Shown here: piece after piece, positions 9,245 through 48,573 of the stretch | How positions within the stretch are numbered: position 1 is the stretch's first letter | How the letters are laid out: every line of letters begins with the position of its first letter | Sequence record: NC_019526.1 | Length of the DNA: 64,000 bases | Strand: one strand, 5' to 3' | Notes under the pieces: generated by a model | What the model was told of the DNA's origin: nothing | What the model saw: only the letters and a program-made list of their open reading frames with translations | Database searches by the model: none | Translations under genes and position numbers: made by a program

Positions 9245-9490
9245 ATGATACTATCTAAAGAAGAACAACAAATTGTTGCACAAGCAATGAGTCTTTTGCA
9301 CTTAACCACTGACAAAGAAAAAGATTTATTCAATCGTCTTAAAACTGGGGTTGATACAGTTCAACGTATAAAAGAGAGTAATGAACGTAAAATGAAATTC
9401 CATGCATCACTCATAGCTATGTATGGTCCAAATGCACATTTACATTATAATGATTATTATCAATACTGTGAAAAAAATGGTTTTTGGTGA
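9245..9490 (+). CDS. hypothetical protein
   Basis: MILSKEE N-terminus shared with 8330..8611. Confidence 0.75.
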   Translation: MILSKEEQQIVAQAMSLLHLTTDKEKDLFNRLKTGVDTVQRIKESNERKMKFHASLIAMYGPNAHLHYNDYYQYCEKNGFW

Positions 9491-9534
9491 AATAAAAGAT
9501 TGACAAATAACATTAGTACTGTATAATGTTTACA

Positions 9535-9621
9535 ATCAAGACAAGATTAGTTCAGTAGGTAGGAACCGTTCTATGTGTATCTAAGAATAAGTTGTGGTTC
9601 GATTCCCTATCTTGTCTTGAT
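9535..9621 (+). ncRNA. tRNA-like RNA with 12-bp acceptor stem and 11-nt anticodon loop
   Basis: ATCAAGACAAGA/TCTTGTCTTGAT stem, D arm GTTC-AGTAGGTAG-GAAC, T loop GG-TTCGATT-CC; directly after TTGACA-16-TATAAT (9500-9527). Confidence 0.65.
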
Positions 9622-9625
9622 TTCA

Positions 9626-9815
9626 GTGGTGAGCTTTAGTGATACATCTATTGACGATGCGGGTGTGAGGGTGGCTACCTCAGCAGTGGCGAATTATGTA
9701 GCAACTGTGCTGAAAGATGCTAAGACAGTTCGATTCTGTCCACCCGCCGCACTAAAGGTAGGGTACTAAGTACCAGAAACTAACACGAGGCAGTCGGAAT
9801 ATACGCCTACACCAC
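9626..9815 (+). ncRNA. about 190-nt RNA with an embedded tRNA-like domain (9659-9747)
   Basis: Acceptor GCGGGTG/CACCCGC, perfect T arm GACAG-TTCGATT-CTGTC, enclosed by CTTTAGTG/CACTAAAG and GTGGTG/CACCAC stems. Confidence 0.6.
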
Positions 9816-10626: not shown

Positions 10627-10833
10627 ATGTCAGATTGTAAAAAATATAGTATATCTGGAACATATTCAATAAATTTCAAAGGTCTAAAAGAACAACAACA
10701 AAGAACATTCAAAGTCGTATTTTGTTCAACTAATCCTATTCAAGCATTGAATCAATTAATTACGCAATACTATCTATACAGTACTCCATTTTATATATAT
10801 ATTATTGAATCTTATAAAATTGTGGAAATATAA
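10627..10833 (+). CDS. small protein, probable member of same tandem family
   Basis: STNPIQALNQLI resembles NP-x-x-A motif. Confidence 0.7.
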   Translation: MSDCKKYSISGTYSINFKGLKEQQQRTFKVVFCSTNPIQALNQLITQYYLYSTPFYIYIIESYKIVEI

Positions 10834-10835
10834 AA

Positions 10836-11018
10836 ATGAATTATTATACTTTTGCATTGAAATATATTTCAGCATATTCACCTAATGTGGAAGGTAAATG
10901 TGTTATAAAAGCACAAGGAAATAATCCAATTGAAGCCATTATGAAAATAATATCTACTAATTCATTCCCTGATAAAAATTCAACGTTTGTACTAATTACT
11001 TCAATTGTCATTCAATGA
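10836..11018 (+). CDS. small protein, paralog of 10428..10622
   Basis: Shared pattern. Confidence 0.75.
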   Translation: MNYYTFALKYISAYSPNVEGKCVIKAQGNNPIEAIMKIISTNSFPDKNSTFVLITSIVIQ

Positions 11019-11033
11019 TAATTTGGATATAGT

Positions 11034-11297
11034 ATGAATATATATACAGTAACTGGAATTCATATGGCTCAATTTACAGGAACATTTCCAATGATTGGTG
11101 GTGTTCCTGTAAATACAATTCCTAAAAAATTTAAATTCCGAATTTCAGCAGATAATGAAGTACATGCGTATTATAAAGTTATAGAAAAATATAATGTTTA
11201 TAATACCTGCAATTATTTTTATATAATTTATGATGTTAAAGTTGACATTCATTATACCCCATATAGTAAGAATAACCTCATTAATATCTTAATCTAA
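11034..11297 (+). CDS. hypothetical protein
   Basis: Packed + strand ORF. Confidence 0.7.
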   Translation: MNIYTVTGIHMAQFTGTFPMIGGVPVNTIPKKFKFRISADNEVHAYYKVIEKYNVYNTCNYFYIIYDVKVDIHYTPYSKNNLINILI

Positions 11298-11310
11298 CAG
11301 AGAAAATAAA

Positions 11311-11979
11311 ATGCTTGCTAATCTGAAATACATGATCAGTACTGAAGCACGTGATGAAAAAGGTTGCTACATTAAATCCGAAACCAAAACATTTGATGAT
11401 CTTGGTATGAGTGGTGTTTTTCATGAATGTCATTTCGATCCATATCACCCATTTTGGTCTAAACATCAGGAACCAGAGAAAGTACAAAATACTCGAATTT
11501 TTTGTGCATTACAAACAAATACACCTGGCATCATCGCGGCGTATAATGCGGATGATGTAATCGACCACATGACGAATTATGAAGTAATCGATGAGCACCC
11601 AATGATTAGTCCAAGGGGTGAAGTTTATACACATCAAGATTTCCATTCAATGTTTAATGAAATGGAGAGGATCATTCTTCCCAGTGGTAAACAACGACCT
11701 GAATATATGAACTTGGTTGGTTCTTATGGTGTAGCAGATAACATTGAACAAATTCTTCGTAAGTATAAATCATTGTTAAATAGTCCAGATGAAGTTGTAT
11801 TAACTATCCATCCTGTACTGAAAAAGGATCAACCAGAAAGTGGTGGTTGGCGTTGGCATAAATGGGGGTCATATATCGGCAATCACAAGATTAAGTGTGA
11901 ATATTTGTATGATGAAGTTGGTATTGATAAAGTTTTGTGTTATAATTGGATCTACGTAAAACCCAAAAAAGGAATCTAA
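11311..11979 (+). CDS. phage protein of the GWRWHKWGxYIG family
   Basis: C-terminal domain YGVADNIEQ...GGWRWHKWGSYIG; paralog at 23646..24233. Confidence 0.8.
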   Translation: MLANLKYMISTEARDEKGCYIKSETKTFDDLGMSGVFHECHFDPYHPFWSKHQEPEKVQNTRIFCALQTNTPGIIAAYNADDVIDHMTNYEVIDEHPMISPRGEVYTHQDFHSMFNEMERIILPSGKQRPEYMNLVGSYGVADNIEQILRKYKSLLNSPDEVVLTIHPVLKKDQPESGGWRWHKWGSYIGNHKIKCEYLYDEVGIDKVLCYNWIYVKPKKGI

Positions 11980-38042: not shown

Positions 38043-38600
38043 ATGATCATCCAAATCAATAGTTATAAAACAAAAGAAGAACTGACCACCCTTATCATTA
38101 AAGCTATTCAAAAAGGGGAAAGTTATATCAAAATTCCATTAGATAAAACAAGCAATCGTAATATTGTTATTTCTCAAATTGATAAAGATTTTGATATCAA
38201 TATATGCTATATGGAAGAAACCAGTACTGATATCATTTACTCAGGTACTGAATCATTTAAACCAGACCAAATCATTACAGCAGTGTATAATTGCGTCCAA
38301 CGTTATTTCAGTACTGAACCAAATAAAACAATCAGAGAACAACAAAAATACAATACACGAAATATGCAAGAAGTAGAAAAACATAGTAAAAACTTCCCCT
38401 GTGGTATGACCGTCAAAGAATTAAAAGAATTAATTAAAGATTGGCCTGAAACCAATCAGTACGGAGAAGATACTTTAGTCTATATCAGTACTGAATCAGA
38501 TACGGATTGTACTGTACATTCTTCGTGGTGTTCATCAGTAAGAACTAATGATAATGGTACACTTGTATATGACTTAACTCTTGATACAGAACAAAGATAA
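38043..38600 (+). CDS. hypothetical protein
   Basis: AAGGA SD. Confidence 0.75.
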   Translation: MIIQINSYKTKEELTTLIIKAIQKGESYIKIPLDKTSNRNIVISQIDKDFDINICYMEETSTDIIYSGTESFKPDQIITAVYNCVQRYFSTEPNKTIREQQKYNTRNMQEVEKHSKNFPCGMTVKELKELIKDWPETNQYGEDTLVYISTESDTDCTVHSSWCSSVRTNDNGTLVYDLTLDTEQR

Positions 38601-38608
38601 TTAAAAAG

Positions 38609-38648
38609 ACTCCCCGTAAAACTCGATCAAACGGATTCTACGGGGAGT
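38609..38648. terminator. GC-rich hairpin bounding the gene run
   Basis: ACTCCCCGTA/TACGGGGAGT stem; A tract on left. Confidence 0.5.
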
Positions 38649-39074
38649 ATACTATATTGGACGATATGGTCATTATAGTAGACAATTTAATGGATATGGG
38701 TGATTCAGTACTGATAATAATGAATAGGAATTGATAAGAATAGTATAGTACTATTCAGTACTATTCAGAGTGAATCAGTACTATTAAGAATGATTAAGTA
38801 CTGATATGCCACTAAGTCCGTTTATAAAGTCGCACCCAGTGGGCTACATTTGTAACTATTCAGTACTTAATAATTCAACTCATCAATTATTACAAACCTA
38901 ACTATTTCAAATCTAATTACCCCATTAACTAAATCCCCAAATTATATATTAGCAAAAATCCCAGTACTAAATCAAGAAAAATCTGGATTGTCGATGAGAA
39001 AAAATCTGGATTTTAAAAATTTTGAAATGTCGTTCATAGTTCAGGAAAAAAATGAAATCATAACAAGAAAAGTG

Positions 39075-39103
39075 TTGACACGGACATACTGCCATTATAT
39101 AAT
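39075..39103 (+). promoter_or_regulatory. perfect consensus sigma70 promoter
   Basis: TTGACA-17-TATAAT. Confidence 0.85.
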
Positions 39104-39109
39104 GTAATC

Positions 39110-39590
39110 CTCAAGACGAGAGAATGTTCTCTCACAGAAAATGCGAAGAAGCCGAGTTTATCTGTCCCTGCGTTAGTGGGCTAACATTTGAATAGGACAA
39201 TACGTAGATGAGTGAAAAAGGTTCAAAGGGAAATATTTGATTCCCTGTAGTATAGTTAATGAGTTAGTACTGATTTAGATATAATCATTGAGTAGTACTA
39301 CTGTCGCAAAGGGAAACCTTTGGCTTCCATGGGGAGTGATGACAGAAGGGCATTATCCTCCATATAGAGTTACTGCGAATAACTCCGTAAGTTGGGTTGT
39401 GGCAAACCTCCTAAAATAGTGAATCTACAGTACTACTGATTGGTAGTACTGCTTTTAATTTAAAGTGTTTCTTTCCATAGAGAAAAGGTGCATGTAACTT
39501 GAACATGTGAACTACGGGAACAGTACTGAACAATTCCAGTACTGATTCCTCTCCAAATTTTGGATACAATAATGCTAGGCTTCAGTTAGT
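39110..39590 (+). ncRNA. candidate long structured ncRNA
   Basis: No ORF; many hairpins (CAAAGG-gaaa-CCTTTG, GAGTTA/TAACTC, CAGTACTAC/GTAGTACTG). Confidence 0.5.
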
Positions 39591-39596
39591 ACTGAG

Positions 39597-39715
39597 TGAG
39601 AATGATAATGATTCTCATTTGAATTGGATGAGAACGATTCTCATTTACTATTGCAAATGATAATAGATTGCATTTACGAATGGTTCTCATTCGCAGATGA
39701 TAATGATTCTTATTC
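39597..39715. promoter_or_regulatory. cluster of Fur-box-like sites
   Basis: GAGAATGATAATGATTCTC (16/19 to GATAATGATAATCATTATC) at 39598; 7-1-7 sites at 39629 and 39698; two weaker sites between. Confidence 0.75.
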
Positions 39716-39847
39716 AAAATTGATTTTTCCGATTTTTTCCATTAGTCACCCTTCAGCGTAGGGTTAATTTTTCCCCTGCCGAATCGGTTTTATATTTTCA
39801 AAATCTGGATTAATCATATCAGTACTAACCCAGATAAACAATACCCT

Positions 39848-39862
39848 TTTACAAATCTTTAC
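39848..39862. promoter_or_regulatory. CpxR-consensus direct repeat
   Basis: TTTAC-AAATC-TTTAC (GTAAA-N5-GTAAA on - strand); identical at 40220, 40833, 41067, 48856. Confidence 0.5.
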
Positions 39863-39889
39863 AAAAAGATTCTAAATGCGAATACAAAT

Positions 39890-39908
39890 GATAATGATTC
39901 TCATTTAC
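39890..39908. promoter_or_regulatory. Fur-box-like site
   Basis: GATAATGATTCTCATTTAC, 15/19. Confidence 0.7.
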
Positions 39909-40115
39909 AGTACTGAATACTTTTCCCCACGCCCTGGCGTCTCCGGTTCCTCCCGTCTATATAAACATTATACAGTACTGAAATATTAAGTCAATACTAT
40001 TTTTTCAAAAAGATTAAAATAAAATACTTGCAATCCTGATATTATTATATTATAATGTTTACAGTACTGAGAAAGTGCTTTTGCCAGCTAGGGTGCGGGG
40101 GAGTATGCGTTAAAT

Positions 40116-40134
40116 GAGAATGATAATCATTTAC
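40116..40134. promoter_or_regulatory. Fur-box-like site between convergent promoters
   Basis: GAGAATGATAATCATTTAC, 16/19. Confidence 0.75.
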
Positions 40135-40328
40135 AGTACTGGACGGATTTTCCCACCCTCGGGGGTCTCTTTTTGTCTATGTAGTAATTATACAGTACTG
40201 AGATACTATATCAAGTCTCTTTACAAATCTTTACAAATCACCCGGGGAGATTTTTCTTTACAATAAAAGTACTTGCATAATTCTTTCAGTACTGCTATTA
40301 TATATTCATACCAAACAGGAGAACTACC

Positions 40329-40499
40329 ATGAAATACGCATACTCTTATTTTATTGTGAACGGTGAACGTTTGACCATCGGCCAGGCAGCGGTAAAGCAT
40401 GAAATCATTTGCGATGATCTGGCGAAGATGCTACCAGGTGAAACGCAAGAGTTTTACAAAGGCTTTCAGAAAGTCACTGTGACCCGCTGCGAAGATTGA
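40329..40499 (+). CDS. hypothetical protein (56 aa)
   Basis: Own promoter, AGGAG SD. Confidence 0.7.
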   Translation: MKYAYSYFIVNGERLTIGQAAVKHEIICDDLAKMLPGETQEFYKGFQKVTVTRCED

Positions 40500-40562
40500 T
40501 CCAGTACTGGGGCAGCAATGCCCCTAAAACGTCCTGTAACGCATTGTAAGAGGTTTTAGAAT

Positions 40563-40790
40563 ATGGCTAGAGAAGTTAACGCAGGTGATATAAAGGCGGC
40601 TGTACTGCGTACACTGAAAGCATACGGCAGAAAGTTGAATGATCGCAACGTTCCCTATTATTTCCTTGCTGCTACTCATAAAATGGCAATCGCTGAGGCT
40701 CGCGGGTGGCTGAATGATCGCAGTACTGTAAAGAGTACCAGAACAAGAAACGCAATTGAGCGATGGATAAAAGAATTAAATCATTTCTAA
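40563..40790 (+). CDS. hypothetical basic protein
   Basis: GAGG SD. Confidence 0.65.
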   Translation: MAREVNAGDIKAAVLRTLKAYGRKLNDRNVPYYFLAATHKMAIAEARGWLNDRSTVKSTRTRNAIERWIKELNHF

Positions 40791-40949
40791 TAGTTCAGTA
40801 CTGAAATTATAAGGGGAGTTAATTAATTCCCCTTTACAAATCTTTACAAAAGAATTGTTGACATAGTATCCCAGTACTGGTATTATGTATTCATAGACAG
40901 AACAAGTCTTTGGCCCACCGGGTGCGGGGGAGTATCTATTAGATTGAAT

Positions 40950-40974
40950 GAGAATGATAATGATTCTCATTTAC
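40950..40974. promoter_or_regulatory. overlapping Fur-box-like sites between convergent promoters
   Basis: GAGAATGATAATGATTCTCATTTAC (16/19 and 15/19 registers). Confidence 0.75.
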
Positions 40975-41178
40975 TGTACTGAATATATTTCCGCACCCTT
41001 TTGGGCTTTTCGATTACTTTCTACTTGTTAATAAGTATACCATAATCAGTACTGAATGCAATGGTCTTTACAAATCTTTACAAAAGAAAATAATTATAAA
41101 AAGTACTGAAAAAGTACTTGACGTAATAATGTAGTACTGGCATAATACATCCATACCAAACAGAACGGAGTAACTATA

Positions 41179-41466
41179 ATGTTTAATGAAAATGATCATA
41201 TTGTTAAAGAGTTTTCTTTCAGTAAGCCTATCCATTTAGAAAACGGTGAAACGCTGGACAATAAATTTTATGGTAGTATTATTAAGCGTTATACATCGCG
41301 GAGTAGTACTGGAATTTTGTGGGAAGTGAATAAACAGTACAATGGTAATTCGCTGGTTGTCAATGAGTGGGAAAGTTATGCAGTAGCTGAAATGGATTTT
41401 TCTAACTTTATTACTGAATCTTTGAACGATGATATTTTTTACAAGTTCACGGCGGAAAGGGTTTAA
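41179..41466 (+). CDS. hypothetical protein
   Basis: Own promoter, GGAG SD. Confidence 0.75.
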   Translation: MFNENDHIVKEFSFSKPIHLENGETLDNKFYGSIIKRYTSRSSTGILWEVNKQYNGNSLVVNEWESYAVAEMDFSNFITESLNDDIFYKFTAERV

Positions 41467-41582
41467 AAAGTTTTAAAGAGTACTTGACAACATAAACCAG
41501 TACTGTATAATGTATTGCATAGAAAGGAGATTCCAGAATAATGGAATCTCCGATAAAACAAACTAATCAGGAGTTAATTACC

Positions 41583-42191
41583 ATGAACGTTATCGATACC
41601 ATCTATTCTAAATCTTTTATCGAACTGAATGAAGAGCAGAAAGAAAAAGCAATTGATATTATGCGGGAAATTGAAAATCAGGACACTACCCCTTATTGGT
41701 CAATTGATCTTGTTAACCAGATGAAAGAAAAATTAGTACAATATGGAATTGATGATTCTGAAATTTTGTGGTCTGGATTTTGTTCACAGGGAGACGGTGC
41801 AAGTATCAGCACTGAATCAATTAATGCTGAGATGTTTTTACGTAAGGTAAAAGCGTGGTCTAAATTTAAAGGCTTGCGTAAATTCATCTCCGAAGAAACT
41901 ATTTCTTTGAGTGTTCGCCGGGTGAGCCATCATTACTATCATGAATATTGTGTTAGTGGTAATGTTGAAATTGCTTATTGTGAAGATGTTACCGCCAAAC
42001 AAGAACAATTAGTGGACGATTTGCAAACTTTGATCACAAGTACTATTCGTGATTTGTCTCGTGAATTGTATAAAGATTTAGGGAATGAAAACGATTATCA
42101 AAATAGTGATGAAGCATTGATTGAATTGATTAATGCAAATGATTATAATTTCAAAGTTAATAGTACTGGTAACGTATTGGGGTTAGCGTAA
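41583..42191 (+). CDS. conserved acidic protein of the SGFxSQGDGA family
   Basis: F-x-EL...KEKAI, WSGFCSQGDGAS, HYYHEY, LYKDL..E.DY..SDEA; function unproven; track ATG 41541 lies in a 5' hairpin. Confidence 0.7.
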   Translation: MNVIDTIYSKSFIELNEEQKEKAIDIMREIENQDTTPYWSIDLVNQMKEKLVQYGIDDSEILWSGFCSQGDGASISTESINAEMFLRKVKAWSKFKGLRKFISEETISLSVRRVSHHYYHEYCVSGNVEIAYCEDVTAKQEQLVDDLQTLITSTIRDLSRELYKDLGNENDYQNSDEALIELINANDYNFKVNSTGNVLGLA

Positions 42192-44246: not shown

Positions 44247-44747
44247 ATGGCTAAACTGAATTCTGTGATCGTTGCTCTGCTGGCTGGTGATGTTGCTGCT
44301 CTGAATACTTCTTTCGCGTCGGTATCGATGGAAGATATGAAAACTGTTCGTAATAACTTTAACGAGTTTTACTCCAAGTTTAAAGCTGCTAATGAAGCTG
44401 CTGAAGCGGCGGCGAAAGAGCGTAAAGTACAGATCGAAACCGAAACGAAAGAACTGGTAGACGCCCTGGTAACTGCTGGCCTGGATCTGGAAATGGCCGC
44501 CGAAGTCGCCAGCCAGAAAATGGCGGTGAAATATCCCGAACTGGCTCCGAAGTCTGCAACTGGTAAAACCTGGTCGTTTGAAACCGTATTCGTTAACGTT
44601 GACGGTGAAAAACTGGAAATTGGCACCAAAGGCAACAAAGGCAGTATGAAAGCACTGGCGGCGGCACGCGAAGCAATTGCCGCAGGCAAATACAAAGATC
44701 GTGCTGAATGGATCGCCGCTCACGCCTGGACTGAAACCGAAGCGTAA
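44247..44747 (+). CDS. H-NS/StpA-like nucleoid-associated protein (divergent)
   Basis: SMEDM...EAAEAAAKERK...LVTAGLD matches the H-NS oligomerisation-domain pattern; strongly host-optimal, GC-rich codons. Confidence 0.55.
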   Translation: MAKLNSVIVALLAGDVAALNTSFASVSMEDMKTVRNNFNEFYSKFKAANEAAEAAAKERKVQIETETKELVDALVTAGLDLEMAAEVASQKMAVKYPELAPKSATGKTWSFETVFVNVDGEKLEIGTKGNKGSMKALAAAREAIAAGKYKDRAEWIAAHAWTETEA

Positions 44748-48324: not shown

Positions 48325-48573
48325 ATGTCTAGTATCGTTATCAATGAAACCTTATTATCTGTTACTTATGACAATGACAGTGTTTTTCCGGGTAAAGATT
48401 ATGGGGACGAAATTCCCGTAAAAGTTGAACTCGATCAAAGTGTCGGTAATGCCGACGATATTAAACGCACTATGGTGGTTAAAATTGGCGATATCACTTT
48501 ATTGCCCATTGATATTGATTATATCAAGTTTATGATTGATCGTGCAAATACCATTGCCGAAACCTTCAAATAA
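48325..48573 (+). CDS. hypothetical acidic protein
   Basis: Promoter-hairpin-AGGAG cassette. Confidence 0.75.
   Translation: MSSIVINETLLSVTYDNDSVFPGKDYGDEIPVKVELDQSVGNADDIKRTMVVKIGDITLLPIDIDYIKFMIDRANTIAETFK

Follow-up and report, generated by a model that had tools for sequence, protein, structure and literature searches.

A dense array of predicted host Fur operators in the terminal-repeat leader of Klebsiella phage RaK2 and its possible role on the phage DNA

Why would a virulent phage carry, in a leader that is mostly free of genes, a dense array of sites that look like operators of a regulator of its host? The question is raised by a stretch of 64,000 nucleotides (called the window, with positions counted from its first nucleotide) which corresponds to record positions 186,001-250,000 of Klebsiella phage vB_KleM_RaK2, a jumbo myovirus with a genome of 345.8 kb (345,809 bp) and 32% GC; window positions 39,000-41,600 correspond to positions 225,000-227,600 of JQ513383 at 100% identity. 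Eight palindromes that resemble boxes for the host regulator Fur, six of them strong and two weaker, are found at 39,594-40,972. They were scored in bits with a matrix of 21 nt trained on 12 E. coli sites that had been footprinted or gel-shifted (centres taken from Table 4 of PMC2189734), so that no phage information entered the scores. The initial annotation of this DNA had counted six strong and two weaker sites, a count borne out by the matrix scan. The boxes, to which no strand is assigned, are the following.

39594-39715: box cluster A, five boxes in 122 bp, defined by matrix and consensus scans
39594-39620: double box of cluster A, 27.7 bits at 39600, forming a double site with 39594
39626-39646: box of cluster A, 20.0 bits at 39626
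39655-39675: weak box of cluster A, 19.0 bits at 39655
39672-39692: weak box of cluster A, 13.6 bits at 39672
39695-39715: box of cluster A, 21.8 bits at 39695
39880-39906: box f, AAATGATAATGATTCTCATTT, 29.8 bits at 39886, followed by TTTACAGTACTG and a short hairpin (repeat family D1)
40112-40132: box g, AAATGAGAATGATAATCATTT, 24.2 bits at 40112
40946-40972: double box h, 27.7 bits at 40952, forming a double site with 40946, at the tip of a palindrome

In the 64-kb window, matches of 16/19 to the consensus GATAATGATAATCATTATC start at 39598, 39890, 40116, 40950 and 40956 only, and with up to 3 mismatches allowed these 5 observed matches compare with 0.13 expected from 100 dinucleotide shuffles, none of which reached 5. 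Matches of 14/19 are frequent, with 25 in the window. The 7-1-7 form TGAKAATNATTMTCA with at most 1 mismatch occurs 7 times in the window versus 0.31 times expected, and 6 of the 7 occurrences lie within 39603-40969. When the whole RaK2 genome was scanned with the E. coli-trained matrix, the best four matches were all located inside the array, and sites of at least 24 bits, of which 4 were found versus 0.125 expected from a first-order Markov simulation, are all contained in 1.4 kb. A second matrix was built from 21 phage boxes of RaK2, T5 and phiWec188, and when it was applied to all RaK2 genome pieces, each match of at least 20 bits fell in this same 1.4-kb stretch. The claim of the initial annotation that no sites as good exist elsewhere in the window agrees with the consensus search of the window and with the matrix scan of the genome.

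The RaK2 boxes belong to the same sequence family as host Fur operators such as those of fecI, fhuA, entC, ryhB and gpmA. Leave-one-out scores of the 12 E. coli sites ranged from 18.5 to 28.3 bits with a mean of 21.7 bits, and the RaK2 boxes with 29.8, 27.7, 27.7, 24.2, 21.8, 20.0 and 19.0 bits score at or above these verified operators. By this measure, the RaK2 sequence was shown to be indistinguishable from, and stronger than, verified Fur operators. In the opposite direction, the phage-box matrix was run over 135 kb of E. coli MG1655, and 7 of its 10 top matches were located in the fecI, fecA, fhuA, entC-fepB (two), fepA-fes and fepD-entS regions. These operators represent all six Fur-controlled promoter regions in the scanned 135 kb, and in all six regions the centre of a match coincided to the base with that of the strongest site given by Chen et al. 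2007 (PMC2189734). The top match in the 135 kb, AATTGAGAATCATTCTGAATT, lies in the map/rpsB intergenic region at about position 189,580 of MG1655 (44581-44601 of the piece scanned) and is not among the Chen et al. sites that were compared. A search with the exact 25-mer of the phage boxes (G/T and C/A being allowed at two variable positions) detected 70 bacterial loci from several phyla, each carrying the sequence once, and in a sample of 10 loci the downstream gene was iron-related in 7 or 8 cases, among them a FecCD permease (twice), a TonB-dependent receptor, the heme-binding Shp, a siderophore-binding Peripla_BP_2 protein, a FUR-domain fusion and an imelysin.

The arrangement of the half-sites is also that of Fur operators. 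Fur sites are made up of 9-1-9 dimer units that overlap at 6-bp offsets (PMC2189734), and in RaK2 the same architecture of 9-1-9/7-1-7 inverted repeats with overlapping sites 6 bp apart is encountered. The RaK2 unit is a 25-bp near-palindrome, AATGAGAAT-GATAATG-ATTCTCATT, or a variant shorter by one hexamer; TTTAC(A/T)GTACTG and a short hairpin often come next (repeat family D1). The 25-mer AATGAGAATGATAATGATTCTCATT consists of two overlapping 9-1-9 dimer sites with a 6-bp offset. What is absent is the promoter overlap typical of Fur repression. Whereas overlap with a promoter is the rule for host operators (303 of 363 clusters; PMC2189734), the RaK2 boxes are placed at about +50 to +77 from predicted start sites, and in a consensus scan no sigma-70-like promoter overlapped any box, as the initial annotation had also stated. 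Host and plasmid loci furthermore carry one operator cluster each, whereas in RaK2 eight boxes are packed into a 1.4-kb, largely non-coding part of a terminal repeat.

The boxes are kept in five Alcyoneusvirus relatives of RaK2, and their number varies between relatives. Where the relatives differ, GAGAAT and GATAAT have been exchanged, two adjacent hexamers have changed places, one indel of 6 bp is seen, and a change from C to T gives a better match. Such evolution in whole hexamer units is the behaviour of an array that is read in hexamer register. When 253 distinct phage boxes were compared, 152 had a mismatch (T/C or G/A) at the variable position and 98 had bases there that could pair, and as half-sites thus vary independently (152 asymmetric versus 98 symmetric), recognition by a protein rather than base pairing is indicated. 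With E. coli Fur as the query, tblastn detected no Fur homologue in the RaK2 genome pieces, in the T5 repeat, in phiWec188 or in K38, and RaK2 appears to encode no Fur of its own. Both matrices, the bacterial loci and the hexamer-wise evolution support, at the level of sequence, the earlier designation of these sites as host Fur boxes. The array very probably represents a set of very strong operators for host Fe2+-Fur, and binding in infected cells is likely.

The same family of boxes is present in phages unrelated to RaK2. About 40 T5-like phages and two Phapecoctavirus phages carry a 28-mer of RaK2 (window 40947-40974) with 96-100% identity. In T5 (AY587007), copies 1-4 of the annotated 'direct repeat C' and the palindromes E, G and I, all within 9,468-9,640, are Fur-like boxes which score 21.5-29.8 bits. 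The boxes of T5 Repeat Region 3, which holds the DRE/DRC direct repeats and palindromes E, G and I, form one sequence family with the RaK2 sites. Repeat Region 3 has been discussed as an injection stop signal, and its repeats are kept in all T5-like phages, with a function that, according to the same author, cannot be guessed (Davison 2020); the words 'Fur' and 'iron' have zero occurrences in that text, the most detailed recent one on the T5 repeats. In the T5 literature consulted, the repeats have been ascribed to DnaA or to functions not known. The T5 boxes straddle the calculated shear point of first-step transfer (9,618), and a 7.9% nick at 9,661 adjoins them. In Kenya-K38 and in the distant Pectobacterium phage My1, the arrays, as in T5, lie within the left repeat at about 0.5 kb from its inner end, and the Phapecoctavirus phiWec188 has at least 7 boxes in a non-coding gap of 900 bp. 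T5 and RaK2 thus each have 4-8 boxes in a long non-coding stretch of a long terminal repeat, 0.5-2 kb from the repeat boundary. The two arrays differ in that RaK2 mixes promoters, terminators and small genes into its array, unlike T5, and in that T5 possesses paired DnaA boxes and the inverted repeats IRC/IRD, of which RaK2 has none. Only weak 9/12 promoter matches occur near the boxes of T5 and phiWec188, in T5 no more than in shuffled sequence, and the idea that Fur boxes overlap promoters in these two phages was dropped, as it had only these weak 9/12 matches in its favour. The sister jumbo phage CBB possesses a homologous leader and non-coding layout, but with the phage-derived matrix no box of at least 10 bits was detected in 12 kb of it. 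The conservation that the initial annotation proposed to check thus extends to the five Alcyoneusvirus relatives and not to CBB. In the first 50 kb of Vibrio phage pVp-1, where the repeat region was not located, no boxes were found.

In IMG/VR, 81 loci with two near-perfect boxes within 31 bp were detected by a pattern scan. Many unrelated viral contigs with GC contents from 0.21 to 0.65 carry 4-13 boxes in 150-600 bp, the neighbouring genes being phage genes and not iron genes, and these arrays are situated in gaps of 153-1,608 bp, mostly of more than 500 bp, that are free of open reading frames (ORFs). In 15 of 41 complete contigs the array is at most 600 bp from the contig end, versus 17.5% expected (Kolmogorov-Smirnov p = 0.012). 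Contig L029 has 16 matrix matches, corresponding to 13 boxes in tandem 89-bp repeats, at 10758-11325. Arrays, often at contig ends, were also seen in contigs L060, L050, L077 and L011 and in other unrelated IMG/VR contigs; some are recent tandem repeats and some have regular periods of 29 bp or 37 bp. Plasmids and bacterial chromosomes carry single sites, not arrays, and the one plasmid site inspected, upstream of a DAHP synthase gene, was uninformative.

Single boxes by genome ends are found in other phages. In phage lambda (J02459), a 20-bit Fur box at 48,449-48,469 lies 33 bp from the right cohesive end. The identical box is present in the Qin prophage (around 891-911 of the piece used), where it lies ahead of nohA and about 35 bp from cosN; this Qin site has been gel-shifted by Fur (PMC2189734, Table 4). 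The Qin and DLP12 prophages (upstream of nohA/nohB) and lambda thus resemble RaK2 in having a Fur box on phage DNA by the genome end or packaging site, but in Qin and lambda it is a single box, and there are cohesive ends and no terminal repeats, whereas in RaK2 it is an array in a terminal repeat. My1 has a Fur-like box of 22.6 bits at 16-36, 16 bp from its left end, and a related short palindrome, GAGAATGAGTCTCATTACCGCC, occupies record positions 1-23 of Kenya-K38. The idea that a box generally caps the terminus was abandoned, as My1 has one at 16-36 but T5 and Muenster have none.

Where, then, does the array lie in the RaK2 genome? The array region is also present, with 94-96% identity, in the relatives Muenster, K64-1, RCIP0023, KP13-7 and others. 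In phage Muenster, a terminal repeat of 20,030 bp was identified by PhageTerm, and the DNA homologous to the array opens the Muenster record, of which position 1 aligns with window position 38815. In the related phage CBB, a terminal repeat of 22,456 bp is backed by read depth and pulsed-field gels (PMC5259590). The array would therefore lie 0.8-2.2 kb inside the predicted left repeat boundary of RaK2. It occupies a leader without ORFs (38,650-40,330), which parts the upstream gene block from small early genes, and these small early genes downstream of the leader have sigma-70-type promoters. In addition to the boxes listed above, the following features were identified.

38610-38647, plus strand: terminator hairpin CTCCCCGTA...TACGGGGAG, read from the sequence, closing the upstream block (ORF322, 38043-38600)
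38703-38805, no strand: AGTACT direct repeats just outside the repeat start (repeat families D6 and D10)
38815, no strand: predicted left boundary of the direct terminal repeat of about 20 kb, placed in RaK2 by homology to Muenster
39075-39451, plus strand: ORF-less unit of about 340 nt, from a promoter (39075-39103) to a terminator-like hairpin (39428-39451)
39748-39764, plus strand: terminator-like hairpin after cluster A
39847-39868, minus strand: repeat CTTTACAAATCTTTACAAA, copy 1 (reverse complement GTAAAGATTTGTAAA; families D4 and D8)
39967-39994, minus strand: early-type promoter TTGACT-16-TATAAT after CAGTACTG, directed toward box f
40028-40056, plus strand: promoter TTGCAA-17-TATAAT, directed toward box g
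40150-40165, plus strand: terminator-like hairpin after box g
40187-40214, minus strand: early-type promoter TTGATA-16-TATAAT after CAGTACTG, directed toward box g (inverted repeat I4)
40219-40240, minus strand: GTAAAGATTTGTAAA repeat, copy 2
40273-40790, plus strand: promoter TTGCAT-17-TATTAT (40273-40301) and two small early genes, 40329-40499 (56 aa) and 40563-40790 (75 aa)
40811-40853, no strand: palindromic terminator (40811-40834; I23), then GTAAAGATTTGTAAA repeat, copy 3 (40832-40853; D8)
40858-40886, plus strand: strong promoter TTGACA-17-TATTAT with extended -10 TG, directed toward box h
40912-41007, plus strand: imperfect palindrome of about 95 nt, GGCCCA..GGGTGCGG ... CCGCACCC..TGGGC
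41066-41087, minus strand: GTAAAGATTTGTAAA repeat, copy 4
41118-41466, plus strand: next early promoter (41118-41146) and gene (41179-41466), with which the early gene block of the terminal repeat continues

The leader is modular and holds short promoter-to-terminator units without ORFs. Its early promoters carry CAGTACTG directly upstream of the -10 element, two of this design being directed leftward (39,994 to 39,967 and 40,214 to 40,187). The centre of box g is 59 and 58 bp from the predicted starts of its two converging flanking promoters, that of box h about 66 bp from the start site of the promoter at 40,858, and that of box f about 64 bp from the promoter that reads leftward from 39,994; a hairpin or a terminator-like element comes after each box. 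The earlier description of the region as non-coding holds for most of it, but the two small genes at 40329-40499 and 40563-40790, for which no Pfam or PHROG family was detected, lie between boxes.

Several further observations were made in and around the leader. The unit at 39075-39451 has a perfect TTGACA-17-TATAAT promoter and a terminator-like hairpin built of AGTACT repeats, no convincing ORF and no Rfam match, and may give rise to an abundant early non-coding RNA. The AGTACT direct repeats at 38703-38805, spaced 20-50 bp apart and immediately outside the predicted repeat start, may serve as a terminase or end-recognition site. In the RaK2 genome, 247 copies of the palindromic octamer CAGTACTG were counted versus 2.9 expected, and 937 of AGTACT versus 117 expected. 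The octamer is found directly upstream of the -10 of early promoters and also alone, is about threefold enriched over the predicted 20-kb terminal repeat and is densest at 220-245 kb of the record (window about 34000-59000); AGTACT is abundant in the CBB leader too. ORF327 (41541-42191) contains two further sites of about 20 bits in its coding sequence, at 42083-42103 and 42131-42151, which are partly kept in RCIP0023 and may be chance matches in AT-rich DNA. Four identical GTAAAGATTTGTAAA copies stand between the modules on the minus strand, at 39848, 40220, 40833 and 41067, and GTAAA-N5-GTAAA has only 7 matches in the RaK2 genome, 5 of them in this 5-kb bin. We take this repeat to resemble a response-regulator direct repeat of the CpxR/OmpR type; a crude search for the GTAAA-N5-GTAAA pattern near E. 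coli degP gave nothing usable for a CpxR-type reading. A similar TTTACATTTCTTTAC adjoins the box array of phiWec188 (about 6270). No tRNA genes or known RNA families were detected in the region. A replication origin with iterons is not supported, as there is no sign change of the GC skew, as DnaA boxes (TT[AT]TNCACA) are absent from 38600-41600 and as the neighbouring proteins are without a known family; the cumulative GC skew rises across the window and has a flat stretch only at 36-40 kb.

The reading that we prefer for this layout is a role of Fur on the phage DNA itself, and it can be set out in four steps. The boxes would be very strong operators for host Fe2+-Fur, each long box consisting of two 9-1-9 sites with a 6-bp offset. 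Once the phage DNA enters an iron-replete cell, abundant Fur would coat the array, which lies amid the first early promoters, in the non-coding terminal-repeat leader. In the third step, which is the weakest, the main effect would be exerted on the phage DNA, where Fur-coated boxes would act as roadblocks or as a boundary element, gating the short non-coding units and insulating the early region from neighbouring transcription, and this barrier would be lost only under severe iron starvation. In the last step, Fur would be titrated as the DNA copy number rises, as a secondary consequence and not as the selected function. For the whole chain, including the role as a barrier or roadblock in cis, we estimate a probability of roughly 0.35.

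Several findings support such a role in cis. The array has no counterpart elsewhere in the genome, and its first box stands 0.8 kb from the predicted repeat boundary; the boxes of T5, Kenya-K38 and My1 are about 0.5 kb inside the inner repeat boundary; and the arrays of viral contigs lie in long ORF-free gaps and are over-represented near contig ends. Between the centres of boxes f, g and h and the predicted starts of strong early-type promoters there are about 58-66 bp, and a hairpin comes after each of the three. With the isolated boxes thus situated some 60 bp beyond a strong early-type promoter and just ahead of a hairpin or terminator, Fur would gate these units. Also, a protein as abundant as Fur can fill all sites of a single incoming genome immediately, which fits a role in cis.

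Other findings weigh against this scheme. A roadblock ahead of a terminator has no obvious downstream target, and a graded iron sensor would be poorly served by sites that surpass nearly all host sites in strength. CBB has the same layout and the hairpin but no Fur box, so that whatever the boxes do is dispensable for the core functions that the two phages share. As the arrays of T5 and phiWec188 are without strong flanking promoters, the promoter-box-terminator layout is specific to RaK2. The tandem amplification of boxes in contig L029 looks like selection for dosage and favours a sink. Furthermore, the occupancy of these phage boxes by Fur is itself predicted from sequence.

The alternative that survives best is a Fur sponge acting in trans, the first of the two functions put forward in the initial annotation, in which the array would soak up Fe-Fur and derepress host iron uptake, RyhB and the Mn-dependent ribonucleotide reductase. 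It accounts well for the strength of the sites, which outscore almost all verified host operators, for their number, since each of the two repeat copies of a genome has eight boxes, or about 12 dimer sites, which replication multiplies, and for their position clear of promoters. The array is also an accessory feature, present in Alcyoneusvirus but not in CBB, and the box count varies between relatives and is tandemly amplified in one contig, as a sponge would permit; RaK2 moreover encodes the iron-dependent NrdAB and NrdDG. The principle that multicopy Fur sites titrate Fur, as in the Fur titration assay, applies to the phage boxes as to host operators (PMC2189734). An analogy, for this reading only, is offered by sequestration in a high-affinity cluster for a different protein. 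At the chromosomal datA locus of E. coli, a cluster of DnaA boxes titrates this abundant regulator instead of controlling a promoter, as has been tested experimentally. However, cells contain thousands of Fur molecules, and one infecting genome brings only about 25 dimer sites, so that a sponge effect would come late, when host expression may already have been shut down. A sponge could sit anywhere, yet the position at the repeat boundary is conserved in unrelated phages, and the strong promoters that face the boxes would tend to displace a protein bound to them as a decoy. Host DNA is degraded early by T5, which carries the same array, and a purely titrating effect on host genes would be pointless there. 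Position and timing slightly favour a role in cis over a pure Fur sponge, and a roadblock or switch, the second function put forward in the initial annotation, fits the layout somewhat better than a sponge does. The sponge is, in our estimation, a live but less likely option.

A second alternative is that the array forms a protein-DNA element of the genome end, concerned with pausing of DNA entry (as in the T5 injection stop), with the start or end of packaging or with duplication of the repeat, and that Fur has an architectural part in it. This would agree with the T5 boxes that straddle the shear point at 9,618 and adjoin the 7.9% nick, with the arrays of Kenya-K38 and My1 at the relative position of that of T5, with the RaK2-like array 0.8-2.2 kb from the predicted repeat start, with the lambda box 33 bp from the right end, whose sequence in Qin was gel-shifted by Fur, and with the enrichment of arrays near contig ends, although this enrichment could be an assembly artefact caused by repeats. 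On the other hand, CBB, which has a verified 22-kb terminal repeat and the homologous leader, is without boxes, and two-step entry is not known for RaK2-like phages. By reasoning, a cytoplasmic protein that binds DNA which has already entered cannot easily halt further entry, and no clear physical mechanism presents itself. RaK2 also lacks the DnaA boxes of T5, and blastp of 24 kb of RaK2 (window 36001-60000) against the left 12 kb of T5 gave no match, so that no A1/A2 homologue was detected by blastp near the RaK2 array within these 24 kb. The element as such is rather improbable. Its far-reaching version, in which Fe-Fur would be a host factor at the terminal-repeat boundaries of several unrelated virulent phage families, the array would be part of the T5 injection-stop or end-processing signal and RaK2-like phages would enter in two steps with the 20-kb repeat first, is quite improbable; if it were true, the iron status of the host would gate genome entry or packaging.

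The third alternative holds that the boxes are not Fur sites at all, but sites for a phage protein or hairpins of small RNAs or terminators, whose likeness to Fur operators arose by chance in AT-rich DNA. In its favour is the unit at 40,893-41,012, which lies between a strong promoter and a U-tract and folds as one long hairpin (-45.6 kcal/mol, z = -5.65) with box h at its tip. The hairpin arms GGGTGCGG...CCGCACCC (RaK2 40912-41007, also 40088-40165) are kept in the distant relative CBB, but the homologous hairpin of CBB, about 1 kb inside its repeat start, has no Fur box, so that a box is not needed for the hairpin. The hairpin is, judging from this comparison, the older element, and the box an addition of Alcyoneusvirus at its tip. 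The other three predicted transcripts fold no better than shuffled sequence (1/4 significant), and no Rfam family matches the array region. A selected RNA hairpin as the common denominator was rejected, as only one of the four predicted transcripts folds well and as the variable position is more often mismatched (152) than paired (98).

As to a phage protein, small genes without Pfam or PHROG match do lie between the boxes. Also, RaK2 and phiWec188 have early proteins in common and could share a binding protein. In the comparison of RaK2 36001-60000 with the unrelated phiWec188, several small proteins in common were seen, one example having 50% identity over 68 aa. This suggests that early-gene modules, possibly together with the box array, have been exchanged between the two phages. 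However, the same boxes occur in T5-like phages without a detectable common protein in the regions compared, and they are also present in viral contigs of GC 0.21 to 0.65. A DNA-binding protein common to all box-bearing phages was rejected as a candidate, as blastp of the regions compared gave no RaK2-T5 match and as phiWec188 shares only few small early proteins with RaK2. Considering that the match to Fur operators holds in both directions and to the exact base, an identity other than Fur is very improbable. Finally, a functionless chance cluster of near-matches, as might be imagined in a genome of 32% GC with 25 matches of 14/19 in the window, deserves hardly any credence, being refuted by the observed versus expected counts (5 versus 0.13, and 4 sites of at least 24 bits versus 0.125 in 346 kb, within 1.4 kb), by the retention of the boxes in five relatives and by the near-identity of the 28-mer in unrelated phages.

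A host Fur box on a phage genome that ties expression to iron is not without precedent, since the stx1 promoter of Stx1 prophages is repressed by Fur, but there a single operator overlaps one promoter and controls one gene of a temperate phage. No paper was found that links Fur boxes or Fur titration to phage arrays of the kind described here; subscription papers were thinly covered, and a prior mention cannot be excluded. What appears to be new is that predicted Fur operators occur in the terminal repeats of virulent phages, and there as promoter-less arrays. Bacterial promoters are the textbook setting of Fur boxes, from which dense promoter-less arrays of very strong boxes on phage DNA differ. 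For T5, the old question of what stops DNA entry gains a concrete and cheap test, and it would be worthwhile to scan phage genomes for arrays of sites for host regulators. More generally, the arrays suggest that phages may write sites for a host regulator into the DNA that enters first, which may serve for sensing iron, for insulating early genes or for soaking up the regulator.

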